Shown: positions 22,704 through 43,744, counted from the first letter of the stretch. The stretch: 51,021 nt of DNA from Bugula neritina (GCA_964035545.1 CAXIUT010000056.1:1-51021), one strand, 5' to 3'. Program-made: numbers and translations. Notes: generated by a model from the letters alone, not told the origin.

Positions 22704-22705
22704 TC

Positions 22706-23892: not shown

Positions 23893-26331
23893 ATGGCGAC
23901 ACCTGCAAAGAAGAAACCTGCTGTAACATCAGCGGCGTCAAAAAAAGCAGCCGCCGCCAAGAAAGCAGCGGCGGCCAAAAAGGCCAAATCTGTAAGTGTG
24001 AAAAGTAAACTTTATACGTTTGGGGGCCGTGTCGAAAAGACATTGGCCAATCGGCTGACACACCGCAGTGAAAAAGCAGGGCGTTACGCCGAATACAAAG
24101 TGCAAAAAGGCGGATTGGCGCGGATCAAACCTTTCCGCATGGGGCGGCTTGCGGATTGGCAATTGTCAAAGAACCGTCTTGAAAAAGCGATGGTTTACAA
24201 TGCCGAAGTGGGCTTGGCCGAAGGCGGCTGGAACCAAGACAGCAAATGGCGCAATCGTGTGCTGCTGACAGGGATTTTGGCTGTCAAACTGGGCAAAGAT
24301 TCAATGGCTGCCAGTTGGTTGGCCGCTGGGGTGAATTTACAAGCCAGCAAATTGATCGCACGCAGCTATACCTATGGCTACACCGATCAATTCCGAGCGT
24401 GGCTTAAAGATCATGAAGAGGCCATAGCCACCTCTGATGGTTGGAAAAACATCCTCAAGACGCAGGACCGCAATCAGGTGCTGGCCTATTTGGTGACCTT
24501 TTTGCACACTTTGGGGTCCAAAGATTTAACGCTCGCTTTGGTGTCCAAATTTGGTCTGAAGGGCCATGATGGGCTAATTAGTATTCTTAAAGACCGTGCC
24601 ACACCCAAAGGTGTTACCAACCAGCTGTTCAATCAAATCGACATTGAACAAAGTACAGGATCAGAGCAAGCGAACCGCGTTTTAACCAACCTGAGCAAAC
24701 GGGTTCTATATGCTGCTAAAGTGACCCAACCCGCCAAAGCCACTGCGCCCAAAATATCGTTCTTTTATGCGCAAGAGCCTGTGACACAGCTTGGCAAACA
24801 TATCAAAGGCCTGAACACGCGCGCAAAATCAATGATGACGGAACGAGGGCGCAGTTTTGAAAAGCGCCATCACACGTTCACATCCGCTCTAAGCGCGCTG
24901 CAAGGGGCTGCGGACGTCGCACAAAAACTGCTGGCGGCCCATGAAAATTCAGCCGATCCAGAAGGCACAAATGGGCATGTGATGTTGGCGGAACATGTTC
25001 TTGCCCTATCTGCGCAGCATCTGGATTTTGATCCGAAAAACGTTGAATACCGCCTTAAACCAGCAAGCAGTGTGGCCGCCCGCGCTCATCAGATGGTCTG
25101 CCTCTACACGCAGGCGCTGCAACTTGTTAAAATGCTCAGCGCAGCGCAAGCAGGCCGCGATTTAACCAAATCAAGCATCGCTCCCTATCACACGGATCAA
25201 AAGCAGCTTTGGTTCTCTGATGACGAACAGGCCATTCTGAACCAAGACCCTTCAACGCAGTTCACCACTAACGCTTATTTCCAAGTGCTGTGCGATGCCT
25301 TCTGGCTGTTTGGAACCGGCAAACCCAATGCGGCCAAGGCTCTTTTGGCTATTGTGGTTAAGGATCAAGAGCCTTTCTATCGCAGTTTGAGCGACCGATC
25401 TGGCCCGACAAAACTGTTTGTGGGGGGCTATGGCTGGACAGGATCCAGCGCTGTGTTTGACAGCTTCTTGGGCTATCCAGAGGCCGAAGAAATGCCCGGC
25501 ATTGGGGATGACGCCTTTATCAATGAGGGCGCAGAATCTGAGCCGATGCTACACCAAGGGCCCGCCAGCCTAATGTCGCTGAATGCCAGCATTCAGAAAT
25601 GGGGCACGTTTTCAAAAACAGCGCTGATCCAGTTCTTTAATCTGTGGGTCCTGCGCGCCAATCACAAAAGCTATTTTGAGTATAAAACCGTTGGCGCCAA
25701 TGCGAACATTGCCTCGATCATTGGCGAAGACAGCTATTACCGCATCGTGATGAAACTGTTTTATGACTATGTCCGTTTGCGCAAAAACCCAAAGCGCAAG
25801 TCGTTGATGCCCCGGGCCCTGACCCAGTTCGAACAAAACATCGTGCACGCCATGTACCCCGATGACAAAAGCATTGTGCTGTTCAACAATTCGGTCAACA
25901 CGGATAAGATCAAGACCTTGAACCTGATCTCTGGGCGCTGTGTTTACATCGCGGTGAACCGCAACATCCTTGATCAATTCGCTGATCAGAAACGCTTTAA
26001 CGTGTTCCTCGACACGACGGCGGAAAAATTTGGCGAAACCAAAGTGGAAAAACTACAGGCGTTTTTGGACACATCTGAACAGTTGAACGCAAAGGGCGCG
26101 GGCTCTTACGAGATGATCAACCTGATGTTCGAAGACTGGATTTTGGACGCAGACTACCGCGAAAAAGTGACGACCCAGATTTTCGGATATTATGATGCCA
26201 CCCTAGAGGCCAAAAATCTTGATCCTTCGGTGTCGCGCAAAAACATCGACATGTTTGGGGATTACCTGAACGAGCAGGAAATTAGCGTTCTCAATAAGAT
26301 CAAAGCCAAGCATCCAAAGCTCGCTGTGTGA
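23893..26331 (+). CDS. Hypothetical 812-aa protein with Lys/Ala-rich N-terminus and C-terminal sulfotransferase/P-loop-like domain
   Basis: LFVGGYGWTGSSAVFD loop, YIAVNRNILDQF and LMFEDWI match the sulfotransferase-fold pattern; co-oriented with the phosphonate operon. Confidence 0.6.
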   Translation: MATPAKKKPAVTSAASKKAAAAKKAAAAKKAKSVSVKSKLYTFGGRVEKTLANRLTHRSEKAGRYAEYKVQKGGLARIKPFRMGRLADWQLSKNRLEKAMVYNAEVGLAEGGWNQDSKWRNRVLLTGILAVKLGKDSMAASWLAAGVNLQASKLIARSYTYGYTDQFRAWLKDHEEAIATSDGWKNILKTQDRNQVLAYLVTFLHTLGSKDLTLALVSKFGLKGHDGLISILKDRATPKGVTNQLFNQIDIEQSTGSEQANRVLTNLSKRVLYAAKVTQPAKATAPKISFFYAQEPVTQLGKHIKGLNTRAKSMMTERGRSFEKRHHTFTSALSALQGAADVAQKLLAAHENSADPEGTNGHVMLAEHVLALSAQHLDFDPKNVEYRLKPASSVAARAHQMVCLYTQALQLVKMLSAAQAGRDLTKSSIAPYHTDQKQLWFSDDEQAILNQDPSTQFTTNAYFQVLCDAFWLFGTGKPNAAKALLAIVVKDQEPFYRSLSDRSGPTKLFVGGYGWTGSSAVFDSFLGYPEAEEMPGIGDDAFINEGAESEPMLHQGPASLMSLNASIQKWGTFSKTALIQFFNLWVLRANHKSYFEYKTVGANANIASIIGEDSYYRIVMKLFYDYVRLRKNPKRKSLMPRALTQFEQNIVHAMYPDDKSIVLFNNSVNTDKIKTLNLISGRCVYIAVNRNILDQFADQKRFNVFLDTTAEKFGETKVEKLQAFLDTSEQLNAKGAGSYEMINLMFEDWILDADYREKVTTQIFGYYDATLEAKNLDPSVSRKNIDMFGDYLNEQEISVLNKIKAKHPKLAV

Positions 26332-26343: not shown

Positions 26344-27581
26344 GTGGTAAAATCAAGGTCGAAACCTAAAGGGAAAGATCGCAAAAACAGTCGCTTGCTG
26401 CGCTTTCTTGAATCAGATCACGGCCTGTTTACGCGTGCTCTTACATCGGGTTTGGCATGGGGAGGCGTTCTGCTGGTCACAGGCAGCACAGCTTTGGCCA
26501 AAGACATCGCGGCAGAGGCAATTAGGCCGCGCAATTTCAAACGCACGTTTCGACGCGGGGCGTGGTACGCAAAATTTGGCTGGCCGCGCTGGACCTACCT
26601 GGCAGACCCGTTTTTCACCGTGACCGAAGGCATGGCACCTGACACGTTGCAGGCGTTGTTGCGGTTTTGGGATCGGCGTTGTGCACATTTGAAAGAGCCA
26701 GGCCGCAGTTTGGAACGGCTGTGCATTCTGGGCGCTTTGATCGACAGCACAACACGAAACACAACACAGGATCGGGGCCAACGGGTACAGTTTCAAACAG
26801 ACCTGACCTCCCAAATCACACAGCTGCGGGCCACGGCAGCACCAGCGCTTAGCACGCCGTCCCCGCGCGATGTGGACCACGATTTTGCCGTTGATGATGC
26901 GATCACGGCTTTGTCTGATTTCACCGCTCTTTTACCCCTGAAACCTATCGCTGGTTTGCGATGGCTGGCACGTTTTTGGGGTTGTACCGTGAACAACGGT
27001 TTCTGCCGTATGAATTGGATGTGGATCTGGGGCTGTATTGGGACCCTGACATCCATGAAAAGGTGCTGAGCTTGTGTAAAGCATCAGATGATTTTGATGT
27101 GCGCCATGTGGAAACCCAACACATCATTCCCCCCTTTGGCGCGCCTGACACACATGTGGTGTTGATAAAGCTGATCCATCGCACGGGGCTGTCGTTTGAT
27201 CTGTTCTACCACCGAGAGGAATCTGGCCAGCTGTGGCACGGATCAGGCCTACACCGCTGGGAAAACACACCCTTTGAGTTGGTTCCCTATGACCTGCATG
27301 GGCTGTCTGTGTTGGGTCCAAAGGATGGGGCTCGATACTTGACCGAGAGCTATGGTGATTGGCAAACGCCTGTTGCGAATTTTGATTACAATACCCAGAT
27401 GCCCAATCTGGTTTGGGCGCCCAATTTTGCAGGGATGGCCCATACGGCAAAGCGGCTGCATCTGTTGCACGACCAGCAAGACACCACGCTTTATGACGCA
27501 CTGTTAAAGCGTATTCTGGCACTGCCTTTTTTGGCCCAATCGCCCCGAACGTGCACAGATGGGGGTTATGAGGAACAATAG
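26344..27581 (+). pseudogene. LicD-family nucleotidyl/phosphotransferase split by a single-base frameshift
   Basis: ORF 26344..27069 overlaps ORF 26961..27581 (AGTFLGLYRE-F-P-ELDVDLG; YLTESYGDWQTP). Adding one base near 26919-26945 joins them into ...LLPPETYRWFAMAGTFLG. Confidence 0.75.
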
Positions 27582-27901
27582 TGGAACAAGAGGGCGCTTG
27601 ACGGTTTTCTCATTTCTGGGACGTAGGGGTCGAGTCCGGTAGGGGGCGGGATCGTATCATAAGCTCTTCTGCCTCGCTATTTTGACCACCTATATTCGCC
27701 AGTGATAAGAATATGAGCCCATCCTAGGGGCGAGATGTGCGCCAAGAGATCTGGGGAACAATCCAACCCTGCGCGTTTTCGCTGCGCAACAGCTTTGCCA
27801 AGTTGATCTGTGTTCCAGTAAATAATAATGGCGGCTAAAAGGAGAGTATCTCAAAGCGTGGGGCAATTGTGTTTTTGTTTTGAGGCTGGCATCTATTTTG
27901 G

Positions 27902-28564
27902 ATGTCTGGAACGGCCAACATTATTCAACTGAAGATCCGCTTGCTGGGGCTCAGCCCCATGATTTGGCGGCGTGTTCTGGTGCCTGTTTCAATCAGTTTG
28001 CGGGAACTCCAAGGAATTATTCAGGTGGCGATGGGGTGGGAAGGCATTCATCTTTACGAATTTGACATTCGTGCCGTGCGGTATGGGTCGTTTGAATTGT
28101 TTGCAGCAAATCCCGATTTGCCTTTGGCAGAGTTTGTTTTTCGCCAGAATGAGACTTTCTCGTATATTTATGACATGGGAGATCATTGGTCCCATGAAAT
28201 TCGCGTCGAGGGATTTGGTGCTGCTGACCCAAAGAAGACCTATCCCGTTTGCACGGGCGGTTCTGGTGCCTGCCCGCCTGAAGATTGCGGTGGAGTGGAG
28301 GGGTATCTTTACCGCCGTGATGAAGCGGGAGGGTATGACGCGTGGCAGGACTTCGGCGTTATGGTTGAGTGGCTAGATGGCCTTACCAAACAGGACACGA
28401 CTGGTCTGACGGTGCGAGATGTGCTGACCGACGATGTTGAGGCTGCGATGCAGCGTGTCGTTGCGCGGGAGCCGTATCAGGCGAGCAAGTTTTCACGCAA
28501 GCGGATCAATCAGGGGTTCCGGGACGGCTGCCATCTAGAATTGATGCGTCAGCAGATGTGGTAG
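27902..28564 (+). CDS. pRiA4b ORF-3-like protein
   Basis: Same protein as 878..1540. Confidence 0.9.
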   Translation: MSGTANIIQLKIRLLGLSPMIWRRVLVPVSISLRELQGIIQVAMGWEGIHLYEFDIRAVRYGSFELFAANPDLPLAEFVFRQNETFSYIYDMGDHWSHEIRVEGFGAADPKKTYPVCTGGSGACPPEDCGGVEGYLYRRDEAGGYDAWQDFGVMVEWLDGLTKQDTTGLTVRDVLTDDVEAAMQRVVAREPYQASKFSRKRINQGFRDGCHLELMRQQMW

Positions 28565-28681
28565 GCGTGTTCGAAAAGGACCGGTTTCGGACGGGGCGTA
28601 AAAACGTGTCCTTATATTATCTTGACGCAGTTCAGGACAGGCATATAATTACGGACATCTATTTTTTAACAGAAACCACCG
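28565..28681 (+). promoter_or_regulatory. Putative res site overlapping a sigma70 promoter for resolvase-transposase
   Basis: TTGACG (28622)-16 bp-TATAAT (28644); repeated TGTCC/GGACA half-sites around AT-rich cores. Confidence 0.6.
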
Positions 28682-29260
28682 ATGTCCAGAATATTTGCTT
28701 ATGCCCGCGTCTCGACCTTTGAACAGGAGACAGAAAACCAGGTTCTCGAAATCGAAGCGGCTGGGTTCAAAGTAGCGCCACACCGGATCATTACTGAAAC
28801 GATCTCCGGATCACGTGCCATCGCGCAACGCCCAGGCTTTGCCCGCCTGATGGAGAAAATGGAACAGGGTGACGTGCTGATTGTCACCAAACTGGATCGG
28901 TTGGGTCGCAATGCAATCGATGTCTCCAGCACCGTAACCAAATTGGAAGAAAACGGCATTCGAGTTCATTGCCTTGCCCTGGGGGGTGTTGATCTGACCA
29001 GCTCAGCGGGAAAGCTGACAATGGGGGTCATCAATTCCGTGGCCCAGTTTGAACGCGACTTGCTGATCGAGCGCACTCAATCCGGCTTGGCTCGCGCAAA
29101 AGCAGAGGGTAAGCCTCTTGGTCGCCGCCCTAAACTGTCACTGGATCAGCAAGATGAGGTGAAGGAAAAACTTGCAGCTGGCGAAACGATCTCAGGCATT
29201 GCCCGTGATATGAAAACCAGCCGCCAAACAATTATGCGTGTAAGGGATCAGGTACAATGA
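28682..29260 (+). CDS. Serine resolvase/invertase
   Basis: YARVST, KLDRLGR; ATGA overlap with the transposase. Confidence 0.95.
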   Translation: MSRIFAYARVSTFEQETENQVLEIEAAGFKVAPHRIITETISGSRAIAQRPGFARLMEKMEQGDVLIVTKLDRLGRNAIDVSSTVTKLEENGIRVHCLALGGVDLTSSAGKLTMGVINSVAQFERDLLIERTQSGLARAKAEGKPLGRRPKLSLDQQDEVKEKLAAGETISGIARDMKTSRQTIMRVRDQVQ

Positions 29261-30642
29261 AGATGCACATCACCCTCCAGCTAACCGATCCAGACGGCGT
29301 TGTTCACGACCATCAGGTCGCGGTTCTGGACAAGGAATTTAGCACCTCTGGTGAGGTTGGCCTGTCCATTTCAGAAAGCAAGGGTTTGCTGCTCGCGTTG
29401 CAAACGGAAATCACATCTGCCCAAACACAAGCCTATTGCACGGCACACTCGTCGTGCCCTTGCTGTGACCGCAAGTTGCGGAGGAAAGGCCATAAAAACA
29501 TCCGCTACCGCACGGTTTTTGGTGACATTCCTATTCACAGTCCACGGTTTTATCATTGCGCATGCCAAGACAAGGCTGCCCAGACCTTTAGCCCCCTGAC
29601 TGCATTATTACCCGATCATGTTTCTCCAGAAATGCTGTGGCTGGAAAGCAAATGGGCGTCTTTGGTTTCGTACGGTGCTAGCGTGAATTTGTTGAAAGAT
29701 GTGCTGCCGATTGACAAACAACTGACTGCGGAGACCGTGCGCCGACATTTGGGATGCGTTGGCAAGCGCTTGGAAAGCGAATTGGCTGACGAACAATATA
29801 GTTTTGTTGAGACCAGTGCCTATGAACGTGAGCGGCTTCCAGTCCCAGACGGCCCGATCACGGTTGGCATTGATGGTGGCTATGTACGTTCGCGCAAGAA
29901 GGGCCAATCCCATTTTGAAGTGACTGTGGGGAAATCAATTCCTACTGATCGTCCAAATCGTTACATTGGCCTTGTGCAAAGTCATGATGAAAAACCCAAA
30001 CGCCGACTGCATGGCATATTGAAAGATCAAGGCTGGCAGGAAAACCAGCATGTGACGTTCATGACCGATGGGGGCGACAGCGTGATCAATATCGCACGGG
30101 ATATGGCTCCTGCATCCACACATATCCTAGACTGGTTTCACATTACGATGCGCATCACGGTGATGGGACAATATATAAAGGGCCTGATCCATCATAATCC
30201 GGACGAGGGCGAAGAAATGGCCCGGATGCTGCGGCAGATCAAAGGATATCTGTGGAATGGCAATCTGCATAACGGGCAACAGGTTATCGAAGATCTAGTC
30301 ATGGATCTTGATGGGGTTGAAACGGAATATGCCAGCATCAAGGCGCTACGAAAGGCAGCAGGTGAATTCCAGACATACATCACAAATAACGCCTGGATGA
30401 TCCCCAACTATGCTGAACGCCGCCGTTATGGCGAACGTGTCTCGACCGGATTTGTCGAAAGCACCGTCAATACCGTCGTCGGAAAACGCTTCTGTAAACG
30501 TCAACAAATGCGCTGGTCAAAAACAGGTGCACATCTCATGCTGCAAACCCGGACTCGAACTTTGGACGGAACGTTGCGGGATAAATTCGAACAATGGTAC
30601 CCGGGAATGAAAGACAGCAATCAAACCAAATGCGCAGCATAA
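29257..30642 (+). CDS. ISKra4-family (Mutator-like DDE) transposase
   Basis: GIDGGYVR, TDGG, HILDWFHI-MR, STGFVES-VN, KRQQMRWS-GAH; N-terminal CxxC...CxC. Confidence 0.9.
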   Translation: MKMHITLQLTDPDGVVHDHQVAVLDKEFSTSGEVGLSISESKGLLLALQTEITSAQTQAYCTAHSSCPCCDRKLRRKGHKNIRYRTVFGDIPIHSPRFYHCACQDKAAQTFSPLTALLPDHVSPEMLWLESKWASLVSYGASVNLLKDVLPIDKQLTAETVRRHLGCVGKRLESELADEQYSFVETSAYERERLPVPDGPITVGIDGGYVRSRKKGQSHFEVTVGKSIPTDRPNRYIGLVQSHDEKPKRRLHGILKDQGWQENQHVTFMTDGGDSVINIARDMAPASTHILDWFHITMRITVMGQYIKGLIHHNPDEGEEMARMLRQIKGYLWNGNLHNGQQVIEDLVMDLDGVETEYASIKALRKAAGEFQTYITNNAWMIPNYAERRRYGERVSTGFVESTVNTVVGKRFCKRQQMRWSKTGAHLMLQTRTRTLDGTLRDKFEQWYPGMKDSNQTKCAA

Positions 30643-30674
30643 ATGCCCCACGCTTTGGGGTGCTCTCCTCTTTC

Positions 30675-30698
30675 AACGCATTCTTGGGTAAATGCGTT
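30675..30698 (-). terminator. Hairpin downstream of the 1,466-aa gene
   Basis: AACGCATT-N8-AATGCGTT. Confidence 0.35.
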
Positions 30699-30782
30699 TG
30701 GTTAATACCTTCGTACGCGGGGCCGATTAATGAATTCCTAATCTTTACATAGATCCTTTTAGGGTCATTGCAGATGCAGCGG

Positions 30783-33700
30783 TCAACGTTTTTTAGAACC
30801 AGTACGCCGGCGCATTAGACCCTTCCGGGACGACTTTGTTGCGTTTGGATTCAGCTGTTCAATGGCAATGTCGGGGCGATCTGTAAAGATTTCACGGTGC
30901 CCTGCTTGAATTGCGGATTGTATGGCTTCAGCCTTGTTTACGACCCAGATACCGACTCTGGAAGGGTCGATGTCCCCAATCCCATTCTGGGCTTTCAGGG
31001 CTTTTAGTAATGCTTGGTTCAAAGTTATTCCACAGCCAGAAATCGATGAGAAGCGTTCGATTGTCTTTTCAAGGCTGCCAAGCGTTTCAATCGACCGAAA
31101 GTTCACGGATGCAAGCAAAGGAACATCTTTGTCCAATTCTCGAATGGTTTCAAGAATTTCAGGTGAAAAGCTGGTTAGCGTTACCCGATCCATCATATTG
31201 CGGCCACGCAGATTGTCCAACGTCAACGCGGCCATTCCATCGTAATGGTTGCCAACCGCATCGTTCTTTAGCTCAACAAAAACATGCAAGCCGGTTGGTT
31301 GCAGAATATCCAGCACTTCATCTAAGGTAGGTATGGGTTCGTCCAAAACGACTGTCTTTTGCGTTTCGGGTGGAGACCATTTCAAGTTCAGTTTGCGCAA
31401 ATCTGATAAGGTCTGTGTTCGAATGAAACCAGTGCCAGTTGTTGTACGTTCCACAAATGCATCATGATGAACGACAAACTGATTATCTGCAGTCAGATGA
31501 ATATCAATCTCTACGGCATCTAATCCTTCCATTTGGGCAACAGCGCGATACCCTTCTAGAGAGTTTTCGCAATATAGGTTTTTGGCCCCACGATGGCCAA
31601 CAACAAAGGGCTTGCTGCGCGGCTCGGTCACTGATGTTGTGGGGGCTTTGGGGTGCCAAGGATGCAGAGGTTGCATTTTTTCTGCCGTTAGATCGTGCAT
31701 CGCTTGCTCGAATTGCCCGCCCAAACTGCGATCGATATCCACAAAATATTGCCGTGCTCTCATTCGTGTTTCGCCAAGGAAATCATCCCCGTCGACGATG
31801 ACGCGTTTGATCAAATCCAAAAGCTCATCTGGAGAATTGAAAAGATAGCAGTATTTTTCCATTGGCATCGAACTGGATGCCATCCTCAAATTGCTTCCGG
31901 CTGGCATGTACAAGAAAATCGGCCGTCCTGTCGCAAGATAATCGCTGACAACGCTTGAAATATCGGCGATCAAGAAAGCCGCATCAGTCATAAGATCAGC
32001 GGCCAGTTTGGAGCGCTCAATCACGTTGATCTCTTTCTTGCCTTTCAACTGGGTCCGTTTCAGACGTGTTTCAATTTCGCCTAGGTGGGGCAAGCGTCGG
32101 CCAACCCAAGGGTGGAATTTTGCCACAGCTTCAGTTCGGGTGAGTTCAACGGCAGCGGGGAGGAAGGCCTCGCACGTTTGCACGGATGAATAGGCCTGTT
32201 CTGACAGATTTCCTTCCCAAGTCGGAAGATATAAAAAGCTGTTAGGTTTGGTTTGCTCCAGTAATGGCAGCATGTTGCGCAATGTAGGGCGCCCGACAAT
32301 GCGAAATTTGATTGAAGAATAATCAAACCCAGAATTCCGGAACCGGTCAATCTGCGCCTGCCCAGCACACCAGACTTCGTCGTACACGCGAAAGAATTTG
32401 TGGCAGCTGGCGACTTTTTCACTGTCTCCATGGCCAAGGAAAATATGGACCAAATGATTGAAACGCAGCACGTGTAAATTGTTACCCACATTGGAAATAT
32501 ACATAACCGATAGAAGGTTGGGCGTATTGGCGACGAGCCACTCAATCTCTAGCGCAGTCTTAATAAAGACCACATCCAATTCTGGGCGGTTTTTCTTGAG
32601 GAAGTTATAGAGCGCAAGTGTGCGTACGACCAAGATAGCGTTTGGATCAGCGTTCTTGCAATATGAATACCATAGATCGACATAAAATGATGCATCCACA
32701 CCATCGCCAATATGAAGCAGATACCGTGCTTCTTTCATCAGCCCGCGCAGGTCCTCTGCCAAATACTTGCCATGCATCCCCGAAGCTGCATACCACAGTT
32801 CCGGTTTGTCCAGCTTGATCATAAGCGCGGTACCTGCTGCAACACGTGCAGGCTGGTCCCATTCTACGCCGTCCATGATCTCAAGGCAGGCCGCAATGAT
32901 AAGGCTGTTTTCGTCTACAACTTTGCACTTTTTGCCAGCGAAGGTTGAAAATGAACCTGAAATATCAGCGTCTTCATGCAGGGTTTGTTCGAGATATTTC
33001 TTCAGGTTTAGTGGCCTCAAGATTGTGACGTCATCATGGGTATGTTTGGTCAATTCAAAGTCGGTGAGCGTGGTGTGTAAGCCTGAAGACTTAACCAAAA
33101 CAGTCGTTTGGCTCTTTTTGAAATAAACACGTAATGTGACGCGGGTACCATTGGTGCTTTTGAAATGGTAGGCCTCTGCGCCTGGTTCAATAACTGGATC
33201 TATAAGCTCAAACATTCCTGAGTTTGCGATCTCGTGCGCCATGTCTTCTGCGCCATCAACCTCCCGAACACCGAATTCTAGGGCCTCAGGGAAATCCCCA
33301 CCTTCTGTAAACCGCATCCAACTGCGCAGAGTTACGCCAGAAACAAATACAGGGATATCCTTGTCGTTGATGAGGTCGGTCATTGCATTAAACGTTGACT
33401 CAACATGCAAAGGATAGTTCCGCGCCAACCTTCTTGGTAGGTTTTCAAATGGGCTATGCCAGAGTGGTACTGGACCGTCGGAACGCCAGCCTGCAATTGG
33501 GTCGCTTTTCTTCCACCGCCAGCGTCCCAACAAAACTTTCGACGCCTGCTCCTGCGCCATGACTGCCGCGCTTTCGGTTTCTCCAGCGCGAATAAATGCA
33601 GTCAAACGTGCGGCATCAACCCCGCCGGCTCCAAAGGCTTTTCGGAAACGAGGTAAATGTATCCGGTTTGACCAAAGGTACTCTCCCAAATCACCACTAT

Positions 33701-35183
33701 TTTGGATCGTATCTGCCGCGGCCATCAGCAATTCCTGAGAAGGATACGCTTTGTTCAGACGCAATAGGATCGAACGTGCCAATGTATTAAGGCCAAAGCG
33801 GCGTAAGATGGCGACAAGGGTTTTATACGCAGCAAGACTGCGCCCACCTTTTTCAAAATAGACACGACATTCTTCCAACGCCTTGGTTAATTCGCCATTG
33901 AGATATGCAAATCGAGCCCGATAAAACTGTGCCACGAGCGGGGCGTCTTTGTCGATATCTTCAACCATTTCTTGTGCGCGGTCTGTTTTGTTGCGCATCA
34001 ACAGTTGTTCGATCTCAAGCCCTAAAAACTCTGCATTGATCTTTGCAGAAACTGAGGCATTTCGCATCATCTGCACGGCGTCGTCTGCCAGGCCACCAGA
34101 TCCAGAAATAACCGCTTGCTGCACAAGCTGGATGCTGGCGCGCGATCGTGCAGGTAAAACGCTTATTGCATTCTTCTTTGGAAGACTTTTGACAGTTTGT
34201 TCTGCTATCTCTTTGATTGGATTTTCTTCGTCCAAAACATCTGAGTCTGCCAACTGCTGCAAGGCCCGAGCAATCATTTTTGAGCTGGTTTCACCCAAAT
34301 AATTTTCTAGATAGTCCATCATGAATTCGCGGACCCGCTGGTTGATTTCGGGCCGGTTCTCAATCATCTCAAGCATGTCGGCAAACGATGATGCATGAAG
34401 ACCAATTTTGCGATCGTACAGATAGCCTTCTACGGCTGCGCCGTAGCGCGAAATGATTGCTTTTCCTACCAACCAATTTGGAAAAATAACGGGTTTGTCC
34501 AATGCCCATGCATCAAACATAACTGAGTCACAATCGGTAATGACAACATCCGCGTTCAACAGCGCTTGGTCCAATTGAGTGCGGTCAAAATCTTCTTCCC
34601 CGATATCTGGGAAATAGTGGAAATCGCATACTTCGGACAAAGCTTCGGCATAGTCAGAAATGACATCTTGTGTTGATGTGAGTTGGTCCAGTTCTGAGTC
34701 TGCATTTAGCGTTGAGGCGAGCCAGAGTACATTAAGTGGTGGAAGTTCAACCTCTTCATCTGAGGTGTTTTCCGTTTGATCAACGACAATGGGCTTTGGT
34801 CGTTTCGCTTGTAGGCGGCGCAACATATCAATCCGTGGAGATCCCACAGGAATTGCGTTATGTGTTGCAAAAGCAAGACCCTTTTTTGACGTAACGCGCC
34901 GCTGCAACCAGCGTCCTGGGACCAAAAGAGTTTCAAAGCTGTTCGCGCGGAATTCACCTTGTGATTTGCGGAATAAGTAGTTTCGATCAGAGACCAGATA
35001 AGGCAGTAAAACTTCGGCATTGCGTGGAACAAAAAAGGCAAGATTGAGACAGTCTTCATGCATTCCAGGTTTGGCTTGAACTGACATTTCAGTGCCGAGT
35101 GCTTTTTTAATTTCTTTGAAAATTACGGTCTGATGTGGTACTAAATCAGCCGTTTTGGTCAGGTTGAAATTTAGAGTTTTCAT
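30783..35183 (-). CDS. Multidomain protein: TagF-like CDP-alditol phosphotransferase + TPR-like + degenerate LicD-like + second TagF-like + glycerophosphodiester phosphodiesterase
   Basis: VGSPRID...ADVVITDCDSVMFDAWALDKPVIF; GHGDSEK...GRP...YLPTWEG...KFHP...LIADISSVVSDYLATGRP; C-terminal VVGHRG...ENS...VEIDIHLTAD-VVHHD...PTLDEVL...VELK...TDRP. Confidence 0.8.
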   Translation of the reverse strand: MKTLNFNLTKTADLVPHQTVIFKEIKKALGTEMSVQAKPGMHEDCLNLAFFVPRNAEVLLPYLVSDRNYLFRKSQGEFRANSFETLLVPGRWLQRRVTSKKGLAFATHNAIPVGSPRIDMLRRLQAKRPKPIVVDQTENTSDEEVELPPLNVLWLASTLNADSELDQLTSTQDVISDYAEALSEVCDFHYFPDIGEEDFDRTQLDQALLNADVVITDCDSVMFDAWALDKPVIFPNWLVGKAIISRYGAAVEGYLYDRKIGLHASSFADMLEMIENRPEINQRVREFMMDYLENYLGETSSKMIARALQQLADSDVLDEENPIKEIAEQTVKSLPKKNAISVLPARSRASIQLVQQAVISGSGGLADDAVQMMRNASVSAKINAEFLGLEIEQLLMRNKTDRAQEMVEDIDKDAPLVAQFYRARFAYLNGELTKALEECRVYFEKGGRSLAAYKTLVAILRRFGLNTLARSILLRLNKAYPSQELLMAAADTIQNSGDLGEYLWSNRIHLPRFRKAFGAGGVDAARLTAFIRAGETESAAVMAQEQASKVLLGRWRWKKSDPIAGWRSDGPVPLWHSPFENLPRRLARNYPLHVESTFNAMTDLINDKDIPVFVSGVTLRSWMRFTEGGDFPEALEFGVREVDGAEDMAHEIANSGMFELIDPVIEPGAEAYHFKSTNGTRVTLRVYFKKSQTTVLVKSSGLHTTLTDFELTKHTHDDVTILRPLNLKKYLEQTLHEDADISGSFSTFAGKKCKVVDENSLIIAACLEIMDGVEWDQPARVAAGTALMIKLDKPELWYAASGMHGKYLAEDLRGLMKEARYLLHIGDGVDASFYVDLWYSYCKNADPNAILVVRTLALYNFLKKNRPELDVVFIKTALEIEWLVANTPNLLSVMYISNVGNNLHVLRFNHLVHIFLGHGDSEKVASCHKFFRVYDEVWCAGQAQIDRFRNSGFDYSSIKFRIVGRPTLRNMLPLLEQTKPNSFLYLPTWEGNLSEQAYSSVQTCEAFLPAAVELTRTEAVAKFHPWVGRRLPHLGEIETRLKRTQLKGKKEINVIERSKLAADLMTDAAFLIADISSVVSDYLATGRPIFLYMPAGSNLRMASSSMPMEKYCYLFNSPDELLDLIKRVIVDGDDFLGETRMRARQYFVDIDRSLGGQFEQAMHDLTAEKMQPLHPWHPKAPTTSVTEPRSKPFVVGHRGAKNLYCENSLEGYRAVAQMEGLDAVEIDIHLTADNQFVVHHDAFVERTTTGTGFIRTQTLSDLRKLNLKWSPPETQKTVVLDEPIPTLDEVLDILQPTGLHVFVELKNDAVGNHYDGMAALTLDNLRGRNMMDRVTLTSFSPEILETIRELDKDVPLLASVNFRSIETLGSLEKTIERFSSISGCGITLNQALLKALKAQNGIGDIDPSRVGIWVVNKAEAIQSAIQAGHREIFTDRPDIAIEQLNPNATKSSRKGLMRRRTGSKKR

Positions 35184-35797
35184 AAAAATATTTCCTTGGT
35201 CTTTAAGATCGTAATCTGCAATTCAGTGGTGTTTTTAATGCCTCACAACCGAATTGAAGCGGTCGTGATGATTTATAATATCCGTTCTGAAATCCAGATC
35301 ACCGATTTTTGTCAGAATTAAAATGGTTCATATATAGTTAGTTTAACGTTGAAAAGGGATAACCCAATAGACATTTTGTATTCGGGCTCTGCGCATTTTA
35401 AAACTGTAAACTGCGGTGTGATGCCCAGTTTGAGGGTGGGGGACTTAGGCACAAATAGTTTTTGTGGTCTTTTCCCGCAAACGTTCAAGTCGCTCTTTTC
35501 CGTTGTATGCTCATCATTGTGTTGAAATATTTGGACCAATGATCAAGAGGTACGCTGTACATCAGGATAAGATGTGTTGCGCATGAAATTGTAAAATTGG
35601 AGGGCGCATTTCGAGCAGAAATATTGGCCCAAACATAAGCATAAGCGGCAACACGCCGCGCCCAAGATTTCTAGGCATTGATCACCGATAATGAAGGATG
35701 CTAACACACAAGAACAAGCAAGAACGAGTTGACTTTTTTGCAGTTGTGCGAAAAGTTAACGGTAATTACGTCTAAAAATTTTGAAAGAAATGTATAC

Positions 35798-36502
35798 ATG
35801 ACCGAGTCTTCGACGAGCGATCCTTTCTCCCTGCTGCTGTTGTCAGGTGGAGTAGGGCAACGCAGTGAACATCACGAGCCAAAACAATTCTATAACCTTT
35901 TGGGTCACCCTATTGTCGCCCACTCTTTAATTGCTGCAATGCAAGTCGACAAAATTGTGGAGATCATTGTAAATGCGCCGGCAGGTTACGAAGCTCGTAC
36001 AGAAGAAATAATGAAATCTTATTGTGGAACCAAGCCGTTTAAGATCATTAGCCCAGGCAAAAACCGTCAAGAAAGCTGCGAGTTGCTTGCAGAGGCTGCG
36101 TCACATCCGAATGTGGTCTTGCACGAAGCAGCTCGGCCCTTTGTGGACAAAGATGTCTTTGAACGTTTGATCGAAGATCCAGAAACGAATGCAGGCTATT
36201 TTTTGCCGCTATCCTTTTCTATTTGCCAAATTTCGCCAGTGACTCAATTGGTTATGCGAGGCGTTCCGCGGGACGAGGTGTCCAATGTCATGCTGCCCCA
36301 AAAATTTGACCGTGCAGCACTGATAAAAGGGCACAAGAAAGCCCGCGAGCACAATAAAGTTTTTACCGAAGATGCTGTGATGTGCGTGGAAATGACTGGA
36401 ATGCGTTTTAAGGCGCTGCCTGGGGAAAGTAGAAACCTTAAGATTACTACGAAAGACGATTTTTCAGTCGCAGAACATATGTTTGGGAAAATTAACAGAT
36501 GA
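35798..36502 (+). CDS. IspD/TarI-family alditol-phosphate cytidylyltransferase
   Basis: LSGGVGQR-PKQF, G-NRQES, VLHEAARPF, PQ-F, TEDA, NLKITT-DD; probable ATG at 35798 (ORF open from 35729). Confidence 0.85.
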   Translation: MTESSTSDPFSLLLLSGGVGQRSEHHEPKQFYNLLGHPIVAHSLIAAMQVDKIVEIIVNAPAGYEARTEEIMKSYCGTKPFKIISPGKNRQESCELLAEAASHPNVVLHEAARPFVDKDVFERLIEDPETNAGYFLPLSFSICQISPVTQLVMRGVPRDEVSNVMLPQKFDRAALIKGHKKAREHNKVFTEDAVMCVEMTGMRFKALPGESRNLKITTKDDFSVAEHMFGKINR

Positions 36503-37203
36503 CAAGAACAATTTTAATTAGCGGGGCATCGCGCGGAATCGGACTAGAAACGTCCCGTTTGCTCGCGGCCAAGGATTCAGCATTTGACCGTGTTGTCATG
36601 ATCGCACGGGAGTCTGACGACTTTTCTGCTGCTGTGAGCGCCTTACAAGCTGACCAAGGCAACAAAGAAATCATTGCCATTCCAGCTGATCTTTCAGACC
36701 CTGGCATGGTTGATGTTATTTATGACGAGCTGGATAAGCGCGACATCCGCGTGTCCACCATCCTAAACAATGCAGGTTTCACAAAACCTGCGTCTGTTAA
36801 TGAAACCAGGCTGGAAGATTTTGAAATGACGATGCGGGTAAATTTGTATTCGCCGTTTAAGTTCATTCAGACGGCTTTGCATCGCAGTCATCCATTGGCG
36901 CAGATCGTTAACATCGCATCCACAGCTGGCATGAACGGTCGATCTGGATGGCTCAGCTATTCGTCATCGAAGGCGGCTATGATTGCCATGTCGGAAGTGC
37001 TGCGCGATGAGTTGAAACCGTACGGAATTGAAGTCATATGCCTATCACCAGGACGTTGCGCCACTGATTTGCGCAAAAAGCTGGCTCCGGATGAAGACCC
37101 GTCAACAATCATGCAGCCTGGTCAGGTCGCTGATATCATTGAGTTGATGACGTCAGAAACGGGCAAGTTGCTTTTGAGTCAAAATCTGGTTGTCAGAACT
37201 TGA
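36499..37203 (+). CDS. SDR oxidoreductase, probable ketose-phosphate (ribulose-5-P) reductase
   Basis: SGASRGIG, NNAG, YSSSK, PGR-AT-LR; ATGA-coupled to the TarI-like gene, as in the two domains of Haemophilus Bcs1/Acs1. Confidence 0.75.
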   Translation: MTRTILISGASRGIGLETSRLLAAKDSAFDRVVMIARESDDFSAAVSALQADQGNKEIIAIPADLSDPGMVDVIYDELDKRDIRVSTILNNAGFTKPASVNETRLEDFEMTMRVNLYSPFKFIQTALHRSHPLAQIVNIASTAGMNGRSGWLSYSSSKAAMIAMSEVLRDELKPYGIEVICLSPGRCATDLRKKLAPDEDPSTIMQPGQVADIIELMTSETGKLLLSQNLVVRT

Positions 37204-37514
37204 TCAACACTGCTGCGTGAACCAGTTGGTTTGATCAAAGTTTCGGCTTTGACGTTTGAAGGACTTTAACATTACGAGTTTTGAAAGTGCTACAATTTGT
37301 TATGATTGTTAGCCTTTCAAAATTTGTAATGTATTGGTTTGTTAAACCGATACGCTAACTTATTAACATAATAAATATTAGGCGTCTTATCCCGAGGCGC
37401 TAAAACTAATGTAATTTTGTTGAAATTTACCTACTCTGCCGGGTGATATTTGGCCGATTTGGCGCCTATTCGTCGGCCCCTCTTAGAAGGAGAGCACCCC
37501 AAAGCGTGGGGCAT

Positions 37515-38900
37515 TTATGCTGCGCATTTGGTTTGATTGCTGTCTTTCATTCCCGGGTACCATTGTTCGAATTTATCCCGCAACGTTCCGTCCAAAGTTC
37601 GAGTCCGGGTTTGCAGCATGAGATGTGCACCTGTTTTTGACCAGCGCATTTGTTGACGTTTACAGAAGCGTTTTCCGACGACGGTATTGACGGTGCTTTC
37701 GACAAATCCGGTCGAGACACGTTCGCCATAACGGCGGCGTTCAGCATAGTTGGGGATCATCCAGGCGTTATTTGTGATGTATGTCTGGAATTCACCTGCT
37801 GCCTTTCGTAGCGCCTTGATGCTGGCATATTCCGTTTCAACCCCATCAAGATCCATGACTAGATCTTCGATAACCTGTTGCCCGTTATGCAGATTGCCAT
37901 TCCACAGATATCCTTTGATCTGCCGCAGCATCCGGGCCATTTCTTCGCCCTCGTCCGGATTATGATGGATCAGGCCCTTTATATATTGTCCCATCACCGT
38001 GATGCGCATCGTAATGTGAAACCAGTCTAGGATATGTGTGGATGCAGGAGCCATATCCCGTGCGATATTGATCACGCTGTCGCCCCCATCGGTCATGAAC
38101 GTCACATGCTGGTTTTCCTGCCAGCCTTGATCTTTCAATATGCCATGCAGTCGGCGTTTGGGTTTTTCATCATGACTTTGCACAAGGCCAATGTAACGAT
38201 TTGGACGATCAGTAGGAATTGATTTCCCCACAGTCACTTCAAAATGGGATTGGCCCTTCTTGCGCGAACGTACATAGCCACCATCAATGCCAACCGTGAT
38301 CGGGCCGTCTGGGACTGGAAGCCGCTCACGTTCATAGGCACTGGTCTCAACAAAACTATATTGTTCGTCAGCCAATTCGCTTTCCAAGCGCTTGCCAACG
38401 CATCCCAAATGTCGGCGCACGGTCTCCGCAGTCAGTTGTTTGTCAATCGGCAGCACATCTTTCAACAAATTCACGCTAGCACCGTACGAAACCAAAGACG
38501 CCCATTTGCTTTCCAGCCACAGCATTTCTGGAGAAACATGATCGGGTAATAATGCAGTCAGGGGGCTAAAGGTCTGGGCAGCCTTGTCTTGGCATGCGCA
38601 ATGATAAAACCGTGGACTGTGAATAGGAATGTCACCAAAAACCGTGCGGTAGCGGATGTTTTTATGGCCTTTCCTCCGCAACTTGCGGTCACAGCAAGGG
38701 CACGACGAGTGTGCCGTGCAATAGGCTTGTGTTTGGGCAGATGTGATTTCCGTTTGCAACGCGAGCAGCAAACCCTTGCTTTCTGAAATGGACAGGCCAA
38801 CCTCACCAGAGGTGCTAAATTCCTTGTCCAGAACCGCGACCTGATGGTCGTGAACAACGCCGTCTGGATCGGTTAGCTGGAGGGTGATGTGCATCTTCAT
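37515..38900 (-). CDS. ISKra4-family transposase
   Basis: Same protein as 29257..30642. Confidence 0.9.
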   Translation of the reverse strand: MKMHITLQLTDPDGVVHDHQVAVLDKEFSTSGEVGLSISESKGLLLALQTEITSAQTQAYCTAHSSCPCCDRKLRRKGHKNIRYRTVFGDIPIHSPRFYHCACQDKAAQTFSPLTALLPDHVSPEMLWLESKWASLVSYGASVNLLKDVLPIDKQLTAETVRRHLGCVGKRLESELADEQYSFVETSAYERERLPVPDGPITVGIDGGYVRSRKKGQSHFEVTVGKSIPTDRPNRYIGLVQSHDEKPKRRLHGILKDQGWQENQHVTFMTDGGDSVINIARDMAPASTHILDWFHITMRITVMGQYIKGLIHHNPDEGEEMARMLRQIKGYLWNGNLHNGQQVIEDLVMDLDGVETEYASIKALRKAAGEFQTYITNNAWMIPNYAERRRYGERVSTGFVESTVNTVVGKRFCKRQQMRWSKTGAHLMLQTRTRTLDGTLRDKFEQWYPGMKDSNQTKCAA

Positions 38901-39475
38901 TGTACCTGATCCCTTACACGCATAATTGTTTGGCGGCTGGTTTTCATATCACGGGCAATGCCTGAGATCGTTTCGCCAGCTGCAAGTTTTTCCTTCACCT
39001 CATCTTGCTGATCCAGTGACAGTTTAGGGCGGCGACCAAGAGGCTTACCCTCTGCTTTTGCGCGAGCCAAGCCGGATTGAGTGCGCTCGATCAGCAAGTC
39101 GCGTTCAAACTGGGCCACGGAATTGATGACCCCCATTGTCAGCTTTCCCGCTGAGCTGGTCAGATCAACACCCCCCAGGGCAAGGCAATGAACTCGAATG
39201 CCGTTTTCTTCCAATTTGGTTACGGTGCTGGAGACATCGATTGCATTGCGACCCAACCGATCCAGTTTGGTGACAATCAGCACGTCACCCTGTTCCATTT
39301 TCTCCATCAGGCGGGCAAAGCCTGGGCGTTGCGCGATGGCACGTGATCCGGAGATCGTTTCAGTAATGATCCGGTGTGGCGCTACTTTGAACCCAGCCGC
39401 TTCGATTTCGAGAACCTGGTTTTCTGTCTCCTGTTCAAAGGTCGAGACGCGGGCATAAGCAAATATTCTGGACAT
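38897..39475 (-). CDS. Serine resolvase (repeat copy)
   Basis: Same as 182..760. Confidence 0.95.
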   Translation of the reverse strand: MSRIFAYARVSTFEQETENQVLEIEAAGFKVAPHRIITETISGSRAIAQRPGFARLMEKMEQGDVLIVTKLDRLGRNAIDVSSTVTKLEENGIRVHCLALGGVDLTSSAGKLTMGVINSVAQFERDLLIERTQSGLARAKAEGKPLGRRPKLSLDQQDEVKEKLAAGETISGIARDMKTSRQTIMRVRDQVQ

Positions 39476-39592
39476 CGGTGGTTTCTGTTAAAAAATAGAT
39501 GTCCGTAATTATATGCCTGTCCTGAACTGCGTCAAGATAATATAAGGACACGTTTTTACGCCCCGTCCGAAACCGGTCCTTTTCGAACACGC

Positions 39593-40255
39593 CTACCACA
39601 TCTGCTGACGCATCAATTCTAGATGGCAGCCGTCCCGGAACCCCTGATTGATCCGCTTGCGTGAAAACTTGCTCGCCTGATACGGCTCCCGCGCAACGAC
39701 ACGCTGCATCGCAGCCTCAACATCGTCGGTCAGCACATCTCGCACCGTCAGACCAGTCGTGTCCTGTTTGGTAAGGCCATCTAGCCACTCAACCATAACG
39801 CCGAAGTCCTGCCACGCGTCATACCCTCCCGCTTCATCACGGCGGTAAAGATACCCCTCCACTCCACCGCAATCTTCAGGCGGGCAGGCACCAGAACCGC
39901 CCGTGCAAACGGGATAGGTCTTCTTTGGGTCAGCAGCACCAAATCCCTCGACGCGAATTTCATGGGACCAATGATCTCCCATGTCATAAATATACGAGAA
40001 AGTCTCATTCTGGCGAAAAACAAACTCTGCCAAAGGCAAATCGGGATTTGCTGCAAACAATTCAAACGACCCATACCGCACGGCACGAATGTCAAATTCG
40101 TAAAGATGAATGCCTTCCCACCCCATCGCCACCTGAATAATTCCTTGGAGTTCCCGCAAACTGATTGAAACAGGCACCAGAACACGCCGCCAAATCATGG
40201 GGCTGAGCCCCAGCAAGCGGATCTTCAGTTGAATAATGTTGGCCGTTCCAGACAT
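39593..40255 (-). CDS. pRiA4b ORF-3-like protein (repeat copy)
   Basis: Same as 878..1540. Confidence 0.9.
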   Translation of the reverse strand: MSGTANIIQLKIRLLGLSPMIWRRVLVPVSISLRELQGIIQVAMGWEGIHLYEFDIRAVRYGSFELFAANPDLPLAEFVFRQNETFSYIYDMGDHWSHEIRVEGFGAADPKKTYPVCTGGSGACPPEDCGGVEGYLYRRDEAGGYDAWQDFGVMVEWLDGLTKQDTTGLTVRDVLTDDVEAAMQRVVAREPYQASKFSRKRINQGFRDGCHLELMRQQMW

Positions 40256-40565
40256 CCAAAATAGATGCCAGCCTCAAAACAAAAACACAATTGCCCCACG
40301 CTTTGAGATACTCTCCAAAGAGTGTGGCAGCAAAAGGGGCTAAACCGCCTGATGAAATCCTACAAAAGCGCGCCACCCAAACTGTGTTCCATGGGTGGCC
40401 GTCTGCTCAATACTCAGGATAAGATCGGTGACACCATCAGCCTGTAAAATAGCTGCGCAACACCCGTTAACCCAACCACTTGCATCCCAGTTGCGGTATG
40501 GTTTCTGGGTGGTTTGCTTTTTCTATTTTCGGGCAAACCTTACCGCAGCGTACGCTTACAAACGG

Positions 40566-43315: not shown

Positions 43316-43492
43316 TAAATCAACCGCCCCAAGTAAATCGTCTTTCCCCAGAATATGCCACATCTTATGCCCGATAACTATGCTTAAATTGCAGTGATAA
43401 GGCCGTGAAACAACAAGGACAATAACAGTCTTCAGATACAAAAATGGCGCATGAAATCATGCGCCATTCTTATGTGTTCCCAAGTAGAAAAC

Positions 43493-43744
43493 TTAGGGTG
43501 CTGGTGTCGAAGATGTCGCGGAGTCATCTGTAACTGTTGCAACAACCGCGGCTGCGATAACGCCACCAATCACTGCTGTGCCAACGGTCACGCCGCCAAC
43601 CAGAGTAGTTGTTGCAACGGTTGCTGCTGTCGTTGTTGCTGTCGTTGTTGTTGCTGCCACAACAGCTGTTTCAGTTTGTGCAAACGCAGATGTTGAAGTC
43701 AAAGCGACGACAGATGCTGCAACGAGTGTGTGTGTGAGTTTCAT
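43493..43744 (-). CDS. YjbE-like Thr-rich secreted protein (repeat copy)
   Basis: Same as 4778..5029. Confidence 0.65.
   Translation of the reverse strand: MKLTHTLVAASVVALTSTSAFAQTETAVVAATTTTATTTAATVATTTLVGGVTVGTAVIGGVIAAAVVATVTDDSATSSTPAP

Follow-up and report, generated by a model that had tools for sequence, protein, structure and literature searches.

A TagF-Like Transferase Fused to a Glycerophosphodiester Phosphodiesterase in a Plasmid-Borne Cassette from a Bugula neritina Assembly: A Candidate Surface-Polymer Enzyme

Results

Domain organization of the fusion protein

This study concerns a single gene for a multi-domain protein in a 51,021-nt stretch of DNA from the assembly of Bugula neritina (GCA_964035545.1, CAXIUT010000056.1:1-51021), the whole of which is referred to below as the window. 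The gene lies at positions 30783-35183 on the minus strand and is an intact open reading frame (ORF) of 1,466 codons, with an ATG start and an AAGGA-type ribosome-binding site approximately 8 nt 5' of it. Its 1,466-aa product, called here the fusion protein, consists of five parts, all encoded on the same strand. In order from the N-terminus, these are a TagF-like GT-B domain (residues 1-320; 34224-35183), a TPR-like helical repeat region (residues ~325-560; 33504-34211), a degenerate domain of the LicD/nucleotidyltransferase fold (residues ~587-760; 32904-33425) followed by a helical connector to residue 815, a second TagF-like domain, hereafter TagF2 (residues 816-1165; 31689-32738), and a glycerophosphodiester phosphodiesterase (GDPD) domain (residues 1191-1440; 30864-31613). 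TagF2 and GDPD are joined by a Pro-rich linker (residues 1166-1190; 31614-31688), which is unconserved in the family alignment and differs in length by up to ~30 residues between members. The protein ends in a Lys/Arg-rich tail (residues 1441-1466; 30786-30863), as read from the translation and the alignment, and no aligned homologue has one as long.

Neither a signal peptide nor a transmembrane or hydrophobic segment was detected in the protein; in GDPD the maximum KD19 is 1.36, and the lack of a signal peptide predicts a cytoplasmic location for this domain. Pfam and NCBIfam searches found no sugar-transferring glycosyltransferase domain in it, and a promoter and terminator scan of positions 30500-35800 gave counts not above those for shuffled sequence. 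The ORF is not an assembly chimera: a 6,751-nt Logan contig of one sequencing run, possibly from the same sample, spans it completely with zero differences, and the same architecture is present in independent metagenomes.

The predicted catalytic core

The two C-terminal domains are the most conserved parts of the protein. Mean pairwise identity within the family is 0.59 for TagF2 and 0.50 for GDPD, followed by 0.42 for the N-terminal TagF-like domain and 0.26 for each of the TPR and LicD-like parts. TagF2 matches the Pfam family Glyphos_transf (PF04464) with a score of 49.1 bits (E 5e-13), the cut-off being 22.1, and its matches to PDB profiles are weak (Cps3D, 3e-4; TarL, 0.08). Throughout the family its motifs GHGDSEK, LPTWEG, KFHPW, and DISSV do not vary, and neither do His918 of GHGDS and His1024 of KFHPW in any of the 18 sequences compared; His1024 is aligned to His433 of TarL. 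The corresponding pair of histidines is essential in TagF, TagB, and TarL (PMC10901376). By these residues, TagF2 is predicted to be the only intact alditol-phosphate transferase module of the protein.

The GDPD domain is matched by its Pfam family (PF03009) over model positions 1-243 of 244, with 102.1 bits against a cut-off of 23.6 (E 7e-29), and by the PDB profiles of 2pz0 (1.5e-37) and of the Bacillus subtilis enzyme GlpQ (5t91, 2e-26). The catalytic and metal-binding residues are His1197-Arg-Gly, Glu1225-x-Asp1227, His1240-Asp1241, and Glu1304-x-Lys1306, and no member that has the domain departs from the motifs HRG, E-x-D, H-D, and E-x-K; the domain is thus predicted to be catalytically intact. 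As to its subfamily, GDPD scores far under the cut-offs of the NCBIfam equivalog models for UgpQ and GlpQ and has a sub-threshold match to lysophosphatidylglycerol phospholipase D. The sequences closest to it are ordinary UgpQ-type cytosolic diesterases of Rhizobiaceae, encoded in transporter operons.

The N-terminal half

The relationship of the N-terminal domain to TagF and TarL is seen both in PDB profile searches (TarL, E 5e-11; Cps3D, 1.7e-5; TagF, 1.2e-3) and in an AlphaFold2 (AF2) model with pLDDT of 84, for which TarL and TagF are the top Foldseek matches (E 2e-8), above generic GT-B enzymes. In an hhalign comparison with TagF2 (probability 90%), Tyr62 of the N-terminal domain faces the catalytic His918, and at the site of the second histidine Y-F-P-D stands instead of L-H-P-R, with F-P in place of H-P. 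Both histidines are kept in the N-terminal domain of 13 of the 15 full-length relatives, being lost only in the fusion protein and in its nearest relative (P0001). Other invariant residues of the domain are still present, and their retention together with the loss of both histidines indicates that the domain is constrained but probably non-catalytic. It would thus be kin to TagF and TarL by descent rather than by activity, and probably serves as a scaffold or binding module.

Paralogues of the N-terminal domain, either stand-alone (~300 aa) or differently fused, occur in three of the loci that encode homologues of the fusion protein (positions 15665-16582 of locus L006, 18840-20823 of L084, and 12751-13524 of L002), and these may be priming transferases. 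The TPR region was recognized by profile matches to LapB (2e-7) and to designed PPR/TPR proteins (~1e-9) over profile positions ~312-575.

Assignment of the middle domain rests on a structure model and on profile-profile comparison, Pfam being blank: no Pfam match was obtained even at E 10 for the nine members tried. Its AF2 model (pLDDT 76) is aligned by VIA-align to LnuA with Z of 12.2 and to FKRP with Z of 10.4, FKRP is also found by Foldseek at a probability of 1.00, and in the ESM Atlas the clusters closest to it belong to LicD families (TM ~0.6). In addition, the locus L002 encodes a TPR-LicD protein next to its homologue of the fusion protein, and hhalign relates the domain to the LicD half of this neighbor at a probability of 96%. 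In this alignment, D-N-D-I-D of the L002 protein corresponds to P-E-A-L-E of the fusion protein (DxDxD to PxAxE), and the family consensus at the site of the Asp motif keeps one acidic residue only. Gly701 is the sole invariant residue of the stretch, and none of the acidic or other possible catalytic residues is kept throughout; the degeneration extends to every member, and P0007 and P0008 have lost the domain altogether. We conclude from this pattern that it is almost certainly not catalytic.

The first-pass annotation of this sequence had described a five-part fusion composed of two TagF-like domains, a helical TPR-like stretch, a LicD-like domain lacking the DxD aspartates, and a GDPD domain with the usual motifs. 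Pfam, PDB profiles, and AF2 models compared by Foldseek place all segments at or near the positions first proposed, and both TagF-like regions belong to the TagF/GT-B family by profile search (TarL for the first; Glyphos_transf for the second). Its reading of TagF2 as the better conserved of the two, with the motifs named above, agrees with the identities of 0.59 and 0.42, and the absence of the LicD aspartates and the presence of the GDPD motifs are confirmed. The two TagF-like folds and the LicD-like fold it had listed as modules are indeed there; as working enzymes only one of the three stands, since the N-terminal domain has lost its histidines and the LicD-like domain is degenerate.

Distribution of the fusion and its natural variants

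The combination of Glyphos_transf and GDPD in one protein is rare, with about 8-10 protein clusters in all. Ten relatives, nine of them with both domains, were retrieved from 5.8 billion proteins by word-indexed searching. When the TagF2-GDPD half was run with HMMER exhaustively against 1.84 billion cluster representatives, eight clusters were obtained with a single stretch spanning both domains. Four of 185,579 species genomes encode the fusion, those of Natronohydrobacter, a Rhizobiaceae metagenome-assembled genome (MAG), Luteimonas, and a Rhodanobacteraceae MAG. The homologues from metagenomes and species genomes share the architecture at 33-44% identity, and the fusion has been kept across Alpha- and Gammaproteobacteria. 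A plasmid collection, queried with the protein and also with DNA of 22 kb, yielded matches to single domains only, and neither a related plasmid nor a homologue of full length. Full-text literature searches for the Glyphos_transf/GDPD combination gave nothing, and the papers on TagF-like capsule polymerases mention neither a phosphodiesterase nor a LicD domain.

Several variants delimit the conserved part of the family. A complete gene of 695 aa (P0027), followed by an IspD-SDR gene, encodes TagF2 and GDPD only; an 878-aa form in L007 has a different N-terminus and the same TagF2-GDPD core. In a Rhizomicrobium sp. MAG (locus L008, 8298-13279), a four-gene island consists of IspD-SDR, two Glyphos_transf genes, and a stand-alone GDPD gene, the 247-aa product of which is 40% identical to the fused domain. 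This island is flanked by housekeeping genes (phenylacetate and haem), and the ~11 kb annotated around it include no exporter. The minimal, altered, and unfused forms, together with the highest conservation of the two domains, indicate that the TagF2-GDPD pair is the conserved unit and the N-terminal half is accessory. The 1,179-aa protein P0010 of L084 was considered as a natural form lacking GDPD and was rejected, as fragments of GDPD directly follow its gene.

Neighboring genes and the predicted donor

Two genes lie divergently from the fusion gene on the plus strand, an IspD-family cytidylyltransferase (35729-36502; Pfam IspD, 1e-32) and a short-chain dehydrogenase (SDR; 36499-37203; Pfam adh_short, 6e-42). 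In NCBIfam, the window IspD falls under the cut-off for true IspD and also matches the D-ribitol-5-phosphate cytidylyltransferase subfamily, and it is 52% identical to the product of the gene following the homologue in L005. In seven loci (L002, L006, L007, L008, L084, L085, and L089) the SDR is fused to IspD. The pair, fused or split, adjoins the polymerase gene in nine of the 10 loci with readable flanks (the window, L002, L005, L006, L007, L084, L085, L088, and L089), the sole locus without it being L086; in the window and in L088 it stands on the opposite side of the polymerase gene from that in the other loci. More broadly, an IspD homologue occurs within 10 kb in 44 of the 80 genome loci of the TagF2 subfamily and is adjacent in most of the proteobacterial ones.

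The same organization of IspD and SDR is known in Bcs1 of Haemophilus influenzae type b, which makes CDP-ribitol (PMC10299916). By analogy, the two window genes may constitute a split Bcs1-type CDP-ribitol synthase, the SDR acting as ribulose-5-phosphate reductase. These Bcs1-like neighbors and the match to ribitol-5-phosphate cytidylyltransferase point to CDP-ribitol as the likely donor of TagF2.

Plasmid and mobile cassette

The window is one whole contig of a eukaryote assembly of 216 Mb in 321 contigs. Bases 1-12306 exactly repeat bases 38716-51021, and from these identical 12.3-kb ends the replicon is taken to be a circle of 38,715 bp, assembled with overlapping ends. The plasmid, of the RepA-I Rhodobacteraceae type, bears the initiator RepA together with ParA and ParB, and RepA is 69-73% identical to that of RepA-I plasmids of marine Rhodobacteraceae (Pseudooceanicola, Sulfitobacter, and Phaeobacter). 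Most likely it belongs to a bacterium living with the assembled eukaryote. Searches of the entire assembly gave no KpsC/KpsS (Capsule_synth) gene and no Glyphos_transf gene besides the fusion gene, so the chromosome of the bacterium is seemingly absent from it.

The fusion gene is carried by a composite-transposon-like cassette, a 6,818-bp segment with the polymerase, IspD, and SDR genes bracketed by two copies of an insertion sequence (IS) of the ISKra4 family. The left copy of 2,829 bp (27841-30669, plus strand) encodes PRiA4_ORF3, a serine recombinase, and a transposase, and the right copy (37488-40316, minus strand) is its perfect inverted repeat. The transposase of 461 aa has an Atlas score of 0.98 against ISKra4-family clusters; the genes for PRiA4_ORF3 and the serine recombinase, identified by Pfam, are passengers of the IS copies. 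The 25-bp terminal inverted repeats match at 22 positions, and no clear target-site duplications were seen at the IS ends. In the Logan contigs of the single run holding the sequence, the IS arm is covered twice as deeply as the cassette, and a short contig represents the other inner junction.

Export, phosphonate, and other genes of the plasmid

The plasmid also bears genes for polysaccharide export, namely KpsM-like (259 aa), KpsE/CtrB/BexC-like (537 aa), KpsT-like (217 aa), and Poly_export genes at 5169-8333 and 15922-17076, as well as, further along, YjbF and YjbH. An epimerase and a small initiating transferase of the Bac_transf type are also encoded on it. The homologue in L002 adjoins a Capsule_synth gene. 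In other loci of the family there are CDP-glycerol genes, further Glyphos_transf genes, glycosyltransferases, PhoD, and ABC transporters; these are teichoic-acid-like polymer loci of Gram-negative bacteria. A 426-aa DUF2793 protein is encoded directly 3' of the KpsT-like gene (8579-9859), and a 672-aa RTX calcium-binding repeat protein with five 294-nt tandem units, 64-100% identical, is encoded between the replication gene and a polysaccharide export gene (13784-15802).

Genes for a Fom1-type cytidylyltransferase-phosphoenolpyruvate (PEP) mutase, a phosphonopyruvate decarboxylase (Ppd), and an Fe-alcohol dehydrogenase, identified by Pfam and NCBIfam, follow each other on the plus strand at 20276-23842. 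Both PEP mutase (412 bits) and Ppd (491 bits) exceed their equivalog cut-offs in NCBIfam, where the best match of the dehydrogenase is the phosphonate Fe-alcohol dehydrogenase PsrA. A CDP-alcohol phosphatidyltransferase accompanies them (19116-23842 region). Judging by the known chemistry of Fom1-type genes (PMC6697681, PMC8942020), the trio is predicted to make CMP-2-hydroxyethylphosphonate (CMP-HEP). The same trio lies beside the L084 homologue (62%, 52%, and 32% identity), again with a LicD gene, and this recurrence argues that the association is not a chance feature of the present plasmid. Neither Pfam nor NCBIfam matches the 812-aa ORF that directly follows the phosphonate genes (23893-26331), related loci have no counterpart of it, and the Atlas offers no more than a weak sulfotransferase-like lead (score 0.86-0.91).

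Just outside the left IS copy (26961-27581, plus strand), a stand-alone transferase of the LicD family is encoded, in which the D-x-D motif (GTFLGLYRE...ELDVDLG) is intact. It is related by tblastn to the LicD proteins of L002 (3e-20) and L084 (3e-17) and is a conserved partner of the fusion-gene family. At 26344-27581, two ORFs of 241 and 206 aa, of which LicD is the second, overlap by 109 nt in different frames. The LicD domain of the relatives in L002 and L084 makes up the C-terminal half of one protein of 407-493 aa (TPR-LicD in L002), so the ORF pair may be one gene split by a frameshift or a sequencing error.

Discussion

We propose that the fusion protein is a TagF-like polymerase of a capsule or teichoic-acid-like polymer and that its GDPD domain edits, trims, or releases the chain, a reading to which we give about an even chance. 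From the features described above we infer the donor, the acceptor, the polymerase activity, and the cleavage target of GDPD as follows. The protein would be a cytoplasmic, membrane-peripheral, multi-domain enzyme supplied with CDP-ribitol by IspD and SDR. TagF2 would take ribitol-5-phosphate from this donor and add it to a hydroxyl of the growing surface polymer with release of CMP, probably by a two-histidine displacement as in TagF, TarL, and CroT. The flexible Pro-rich linker would tether to TagF2 a metal-dependent phosphodiesterase of the UgpQ/GlpQ type, whose likeliest task would be to break an alditol-phosphodiester bond in the TagF2 product, either at its free end or at its primer end. 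The N-terminal TagF-like, TPR, and LicD-like parts probably provide scaffolding, oligomerization, or polymer binding, similar to the TPR of Cps1B and Cps3D. Export of the product would fall to the KpsM/KpsE/KpsT-like and Poly_export proteins that the plasmid encodes, and the product may carry a 2-hydroxyethylphosphonate decoration.

The two halves of this proposal differ in strength. That one polypeptide both makes and trims a polymer had been the central idea of the first-pass annotation. Its "writer" part is well supported by inference from the histidine pair of TagF2 and from the putative CDP-ribitol synthase in nine of 10 loci. The "eraser" part is plausible by analogy, as the motifs of GDPD are intact and GlpQ degrades TagF-made polymer, which makes such a role chemically reasonable. 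The phosphate salvage suggested at the same time is a poor fit for a cytoplasmic domain welded to a synthase.

Several observations weigh against the proposal as a whole. A hydrolase that simply reversed the transferase would create a futile cycle unless it were selective or regulated. Characterized GlpQ-type enzymes are strictly specific for sn-glycero-3-phosphoryl ends (PMC7086022), so with the predicted ribitol-phosphate monomer the end of the polymer may not be a substrate at all. No KpsC/KpsS gene was found in the assembly that would point to a lipid anchor and an acceptor. In the study of CroT, the residue three positions after the catalytic histidine was found to be Pro in glycerol-phosphate and Gly in ribitol-phosphate enzymes (PMC10299916); the corresponding position of TagF2 is an invariant Ser and hence uninformative on the choice between the two. 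In docking of TagF2 with GDPD, one unrelated control outscored the pair, and this outcome speaks neither way. Finally, GDPD of L084 is reduced to two fragments (11999-12415), with ~100 residues gone, behind the intact gene of P0010, which indicates that the domain is dispensable.

The last observation bears also on the most serious of the alternatives, namely that GDPD performs an obligatory step of each elongation cycle, removing or converting a group just installed, or forming a cyclic phosphate, to let the following unit be added; the repeat unit would then differ from plain poly(ribitol phosphate). The solved precedent for a hydrolase built into a TagF-like polymerase is Bcs3, in which the phosphatase CrpP acts between two transfer steps (PMC10299916). 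Fusion of TagF2 and GDPD in every full member, with high conservation of both, would agree with such a step, and so would the extra donors or transferases encoded in most loci (CDP-glycerol genes in L002, L006, and L007; CMP-HEP genes in L084 and the window), several of which have additional Glyphos_transf or LicD genes. However, no known donor leaves a glycerophosphodiester "handle" that would need removal, the minimal two-gene module of P0027 and IspD-SDR offers one donor only, and decay of GDPD beside an otherwise intact gene in L084 speaks against an essential step. We therefore regard the in-cycle role as possible but unlikely.

The affinities of GDPD itself, with UgpQ-type cytosolic diesterases of Rhizobiaceae transporter operons as its closest sequences and a sub-threshold match to lysophosphatidylglycerol phospholipase D, would fit another kind of substrate, a small or lipid glycerophosphodiester. 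In this case the domain would make the acceptor, free the chain from a (lyso)phosphatidylglycerol-type anchor, or supply sn-glycerol-3-phosphate locally. Group 2 capsules are anchored on lyso-phosphatidylglycerol. But nothing would explain why a general scavenger should be joined to a polymerase and stay joined to it in both Alpha- and Gammaproteobacteria, and the window cassette has no gene for CDP-glycerol synthesis by which glycerol-3-phosphate could be used. A small or lipid substrate thus appears quite unlikely.

The identity of the donor can be questioned as well. The Fom1-type pathway on the same plasmid and beside the L084 homologue, and a diagnostic residue that is neither Pro nor Gly, would be compatible with TagF2 using CMP-HEP or CDP-glycerol, GDPD then acting on a phosphonate-containing or glycerol-phosphate polymer; CMP-HEP, like CDP-glycerol, should be a CMP-activated donor with a free hydroxyl. 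Nevertheless, phosphonate genes are missing from most loci of the family, whereas IspD and SDR are nearly always there, and the stand-alone LicD and the CDP-alcohol phosphatidyltransferase by the phosphonate genes are the more usual candidates for the transfer. We consider such a donor very unlikely. An artefact of assembly or annotation, or a decaying gene devoid of function, might be suspected in a contig from a eukaryote assembly with perfect flanking repeats and two of five domains catalytically degenerate, but it is extremely improbable given the open frame of 1,466 codons, the k-mer contig that crosses the whole ORF without a difference, the recurrence of the architecture in independent metagenomes and four species genomes at 33-44% identity, and the invariant catalytic residues of TagF2 and GDPD.

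Returning to a polymerase whose chain is edited by GDPD, a more specific version can be formulated, which we offer as a speculation with a rather small chance of being correct. The TagF2-GDPD pair could be a self-editing polymerase that, like a proofreading DNA polymerase, removes a wrong or priming unit, for example glycerol phosphate from a ribitol-phosphate chain. Otherwise, cleavage in each cycle could give a linkage beyond the chemistry of TagF, possibly in a copolymer of ribitol phosphate and hydroxyethylphosphonate.

The teichoic-acid-like capsules of several pathogens are products of TagF-like polymerases, which also serve in the enzymatic synthesis of vaccine antigens. The setting of chain length, the choice between CDP-glycerol and CDP-ribitol, and the disposal of the primer are poorly understood in these enzymes, and covalent joining of a transferase to the type of diesterase that undoes its bonds points to a built-in control or processing step. 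The way in which phosphonates reach surface polymers was called still enigmatic by Rice et al. in 2019 (PMC6697681), and the link to CMP-HEP described here gives a handle on their delivery to bacterial surface polymers. The 695-aa minimal form and the unfused four-gene island provide simple experimental entry points.

Comparison with known systems

Each part of the fusion protein has relatives among characterized enzymes. The LicD/FKRP/fukutin family (PF04991) includes FKRP, which transfers ribitol phosphate from CDP-ribitol. The middle domain shares the nucleotidyltransferase fold with this family and is homologous to the genuine LicD protein of L002; it differs in the replaced metal-binding Asp motif, in having no Pfam match, and in its absence from two members.

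TarL, another enzyme using CDP-ribitol, and TagF are the Gram-positive relatives of both TagF-like domains, which are related in sequence to TagF of Staphylococcus epidermidis (3L7I) and TarL of S. aureus (8VA1); for the N-terminal domain the fold is matched by structure search as well. TagF2 keeps the equivalents of His444 and His584 of TagF and of His300 and His433 of TarL, whereas the N-terminal domain has neither. On the other hand, the identity to these enzymes is very low (E for TagF2 in the PDB profile search only 3e-4 to 0.08), the accessory domains are different, and the host here is Gram-negative.

With the GlpQ/UgpQ family (PF03009), including the teichoicase GlpQ of B. subtilis (5T91), the GDPD domain has in common a full-length Pfam match and all catalytic and metal-binding motifs. 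GlpQ exolytically strips glycerol-3-phosphate (Gro3P) units off the free end of wall teichoic acid made by TagF (PMC7086022). However, GlpQ is secreted and active in phosphate starvation, whereas the GDPD domain is predicted to be cytoplasmic and is covalently joined to a synthase; moreover, the substrate of GlpQ is glycerol phosphate, and GDPD may here face ribitol phosphate.

The closest likeness in overall design is to the capsule polymerases Cps1B, Cps3D/Cps7D, and Bcs3 (PMC5974469, PMC11666461, PMC10299916), from which the fusion protein would descend and like which it is predicted to work. These are likewise large, soluble, multi-domain enzymes with a TagF-like GT-B domain bearing two histidines and a long TPR region. 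They have an adjacent gene for a CDP-alditol synthase, putative in the window, and a context of ABC-transporter-type export, which the KpsM-, KpsE-, and KpsT-like genes of the plasmid may represent. In Cps1B and Cps3D the TPR region mediates oligomerization, and elongation of the poly(Gro3P) primer by Cps3D/Cps7D requires it as well (PMC5974469, PMC11666461). In contrast to these systems, KpsC/KpsS genes were not found in the assembly of the window, and the fusion protein has no sugar-transferring GT-A or GT-B domain, thus departing on this one point from the definition of the polymerases given by Litschko et al. in 2018 (PMC5974469). Instead, it adds three modules unmentioned in those papers, a TagF-like domain devoid of its histidines, a degenerate LicD fold, and GDPD. 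Bcs3 also embeds a hydrolase, but that of Bcs3 is a phosphomonoesterase of the HAD type, and that of the fusion protein is a diesterase. Thus a capsule polymerase with an embedded hydrolase is known already, and the feature met in none of the papers searched is the conserved pairing of a TagF-like domain with a diesterase.

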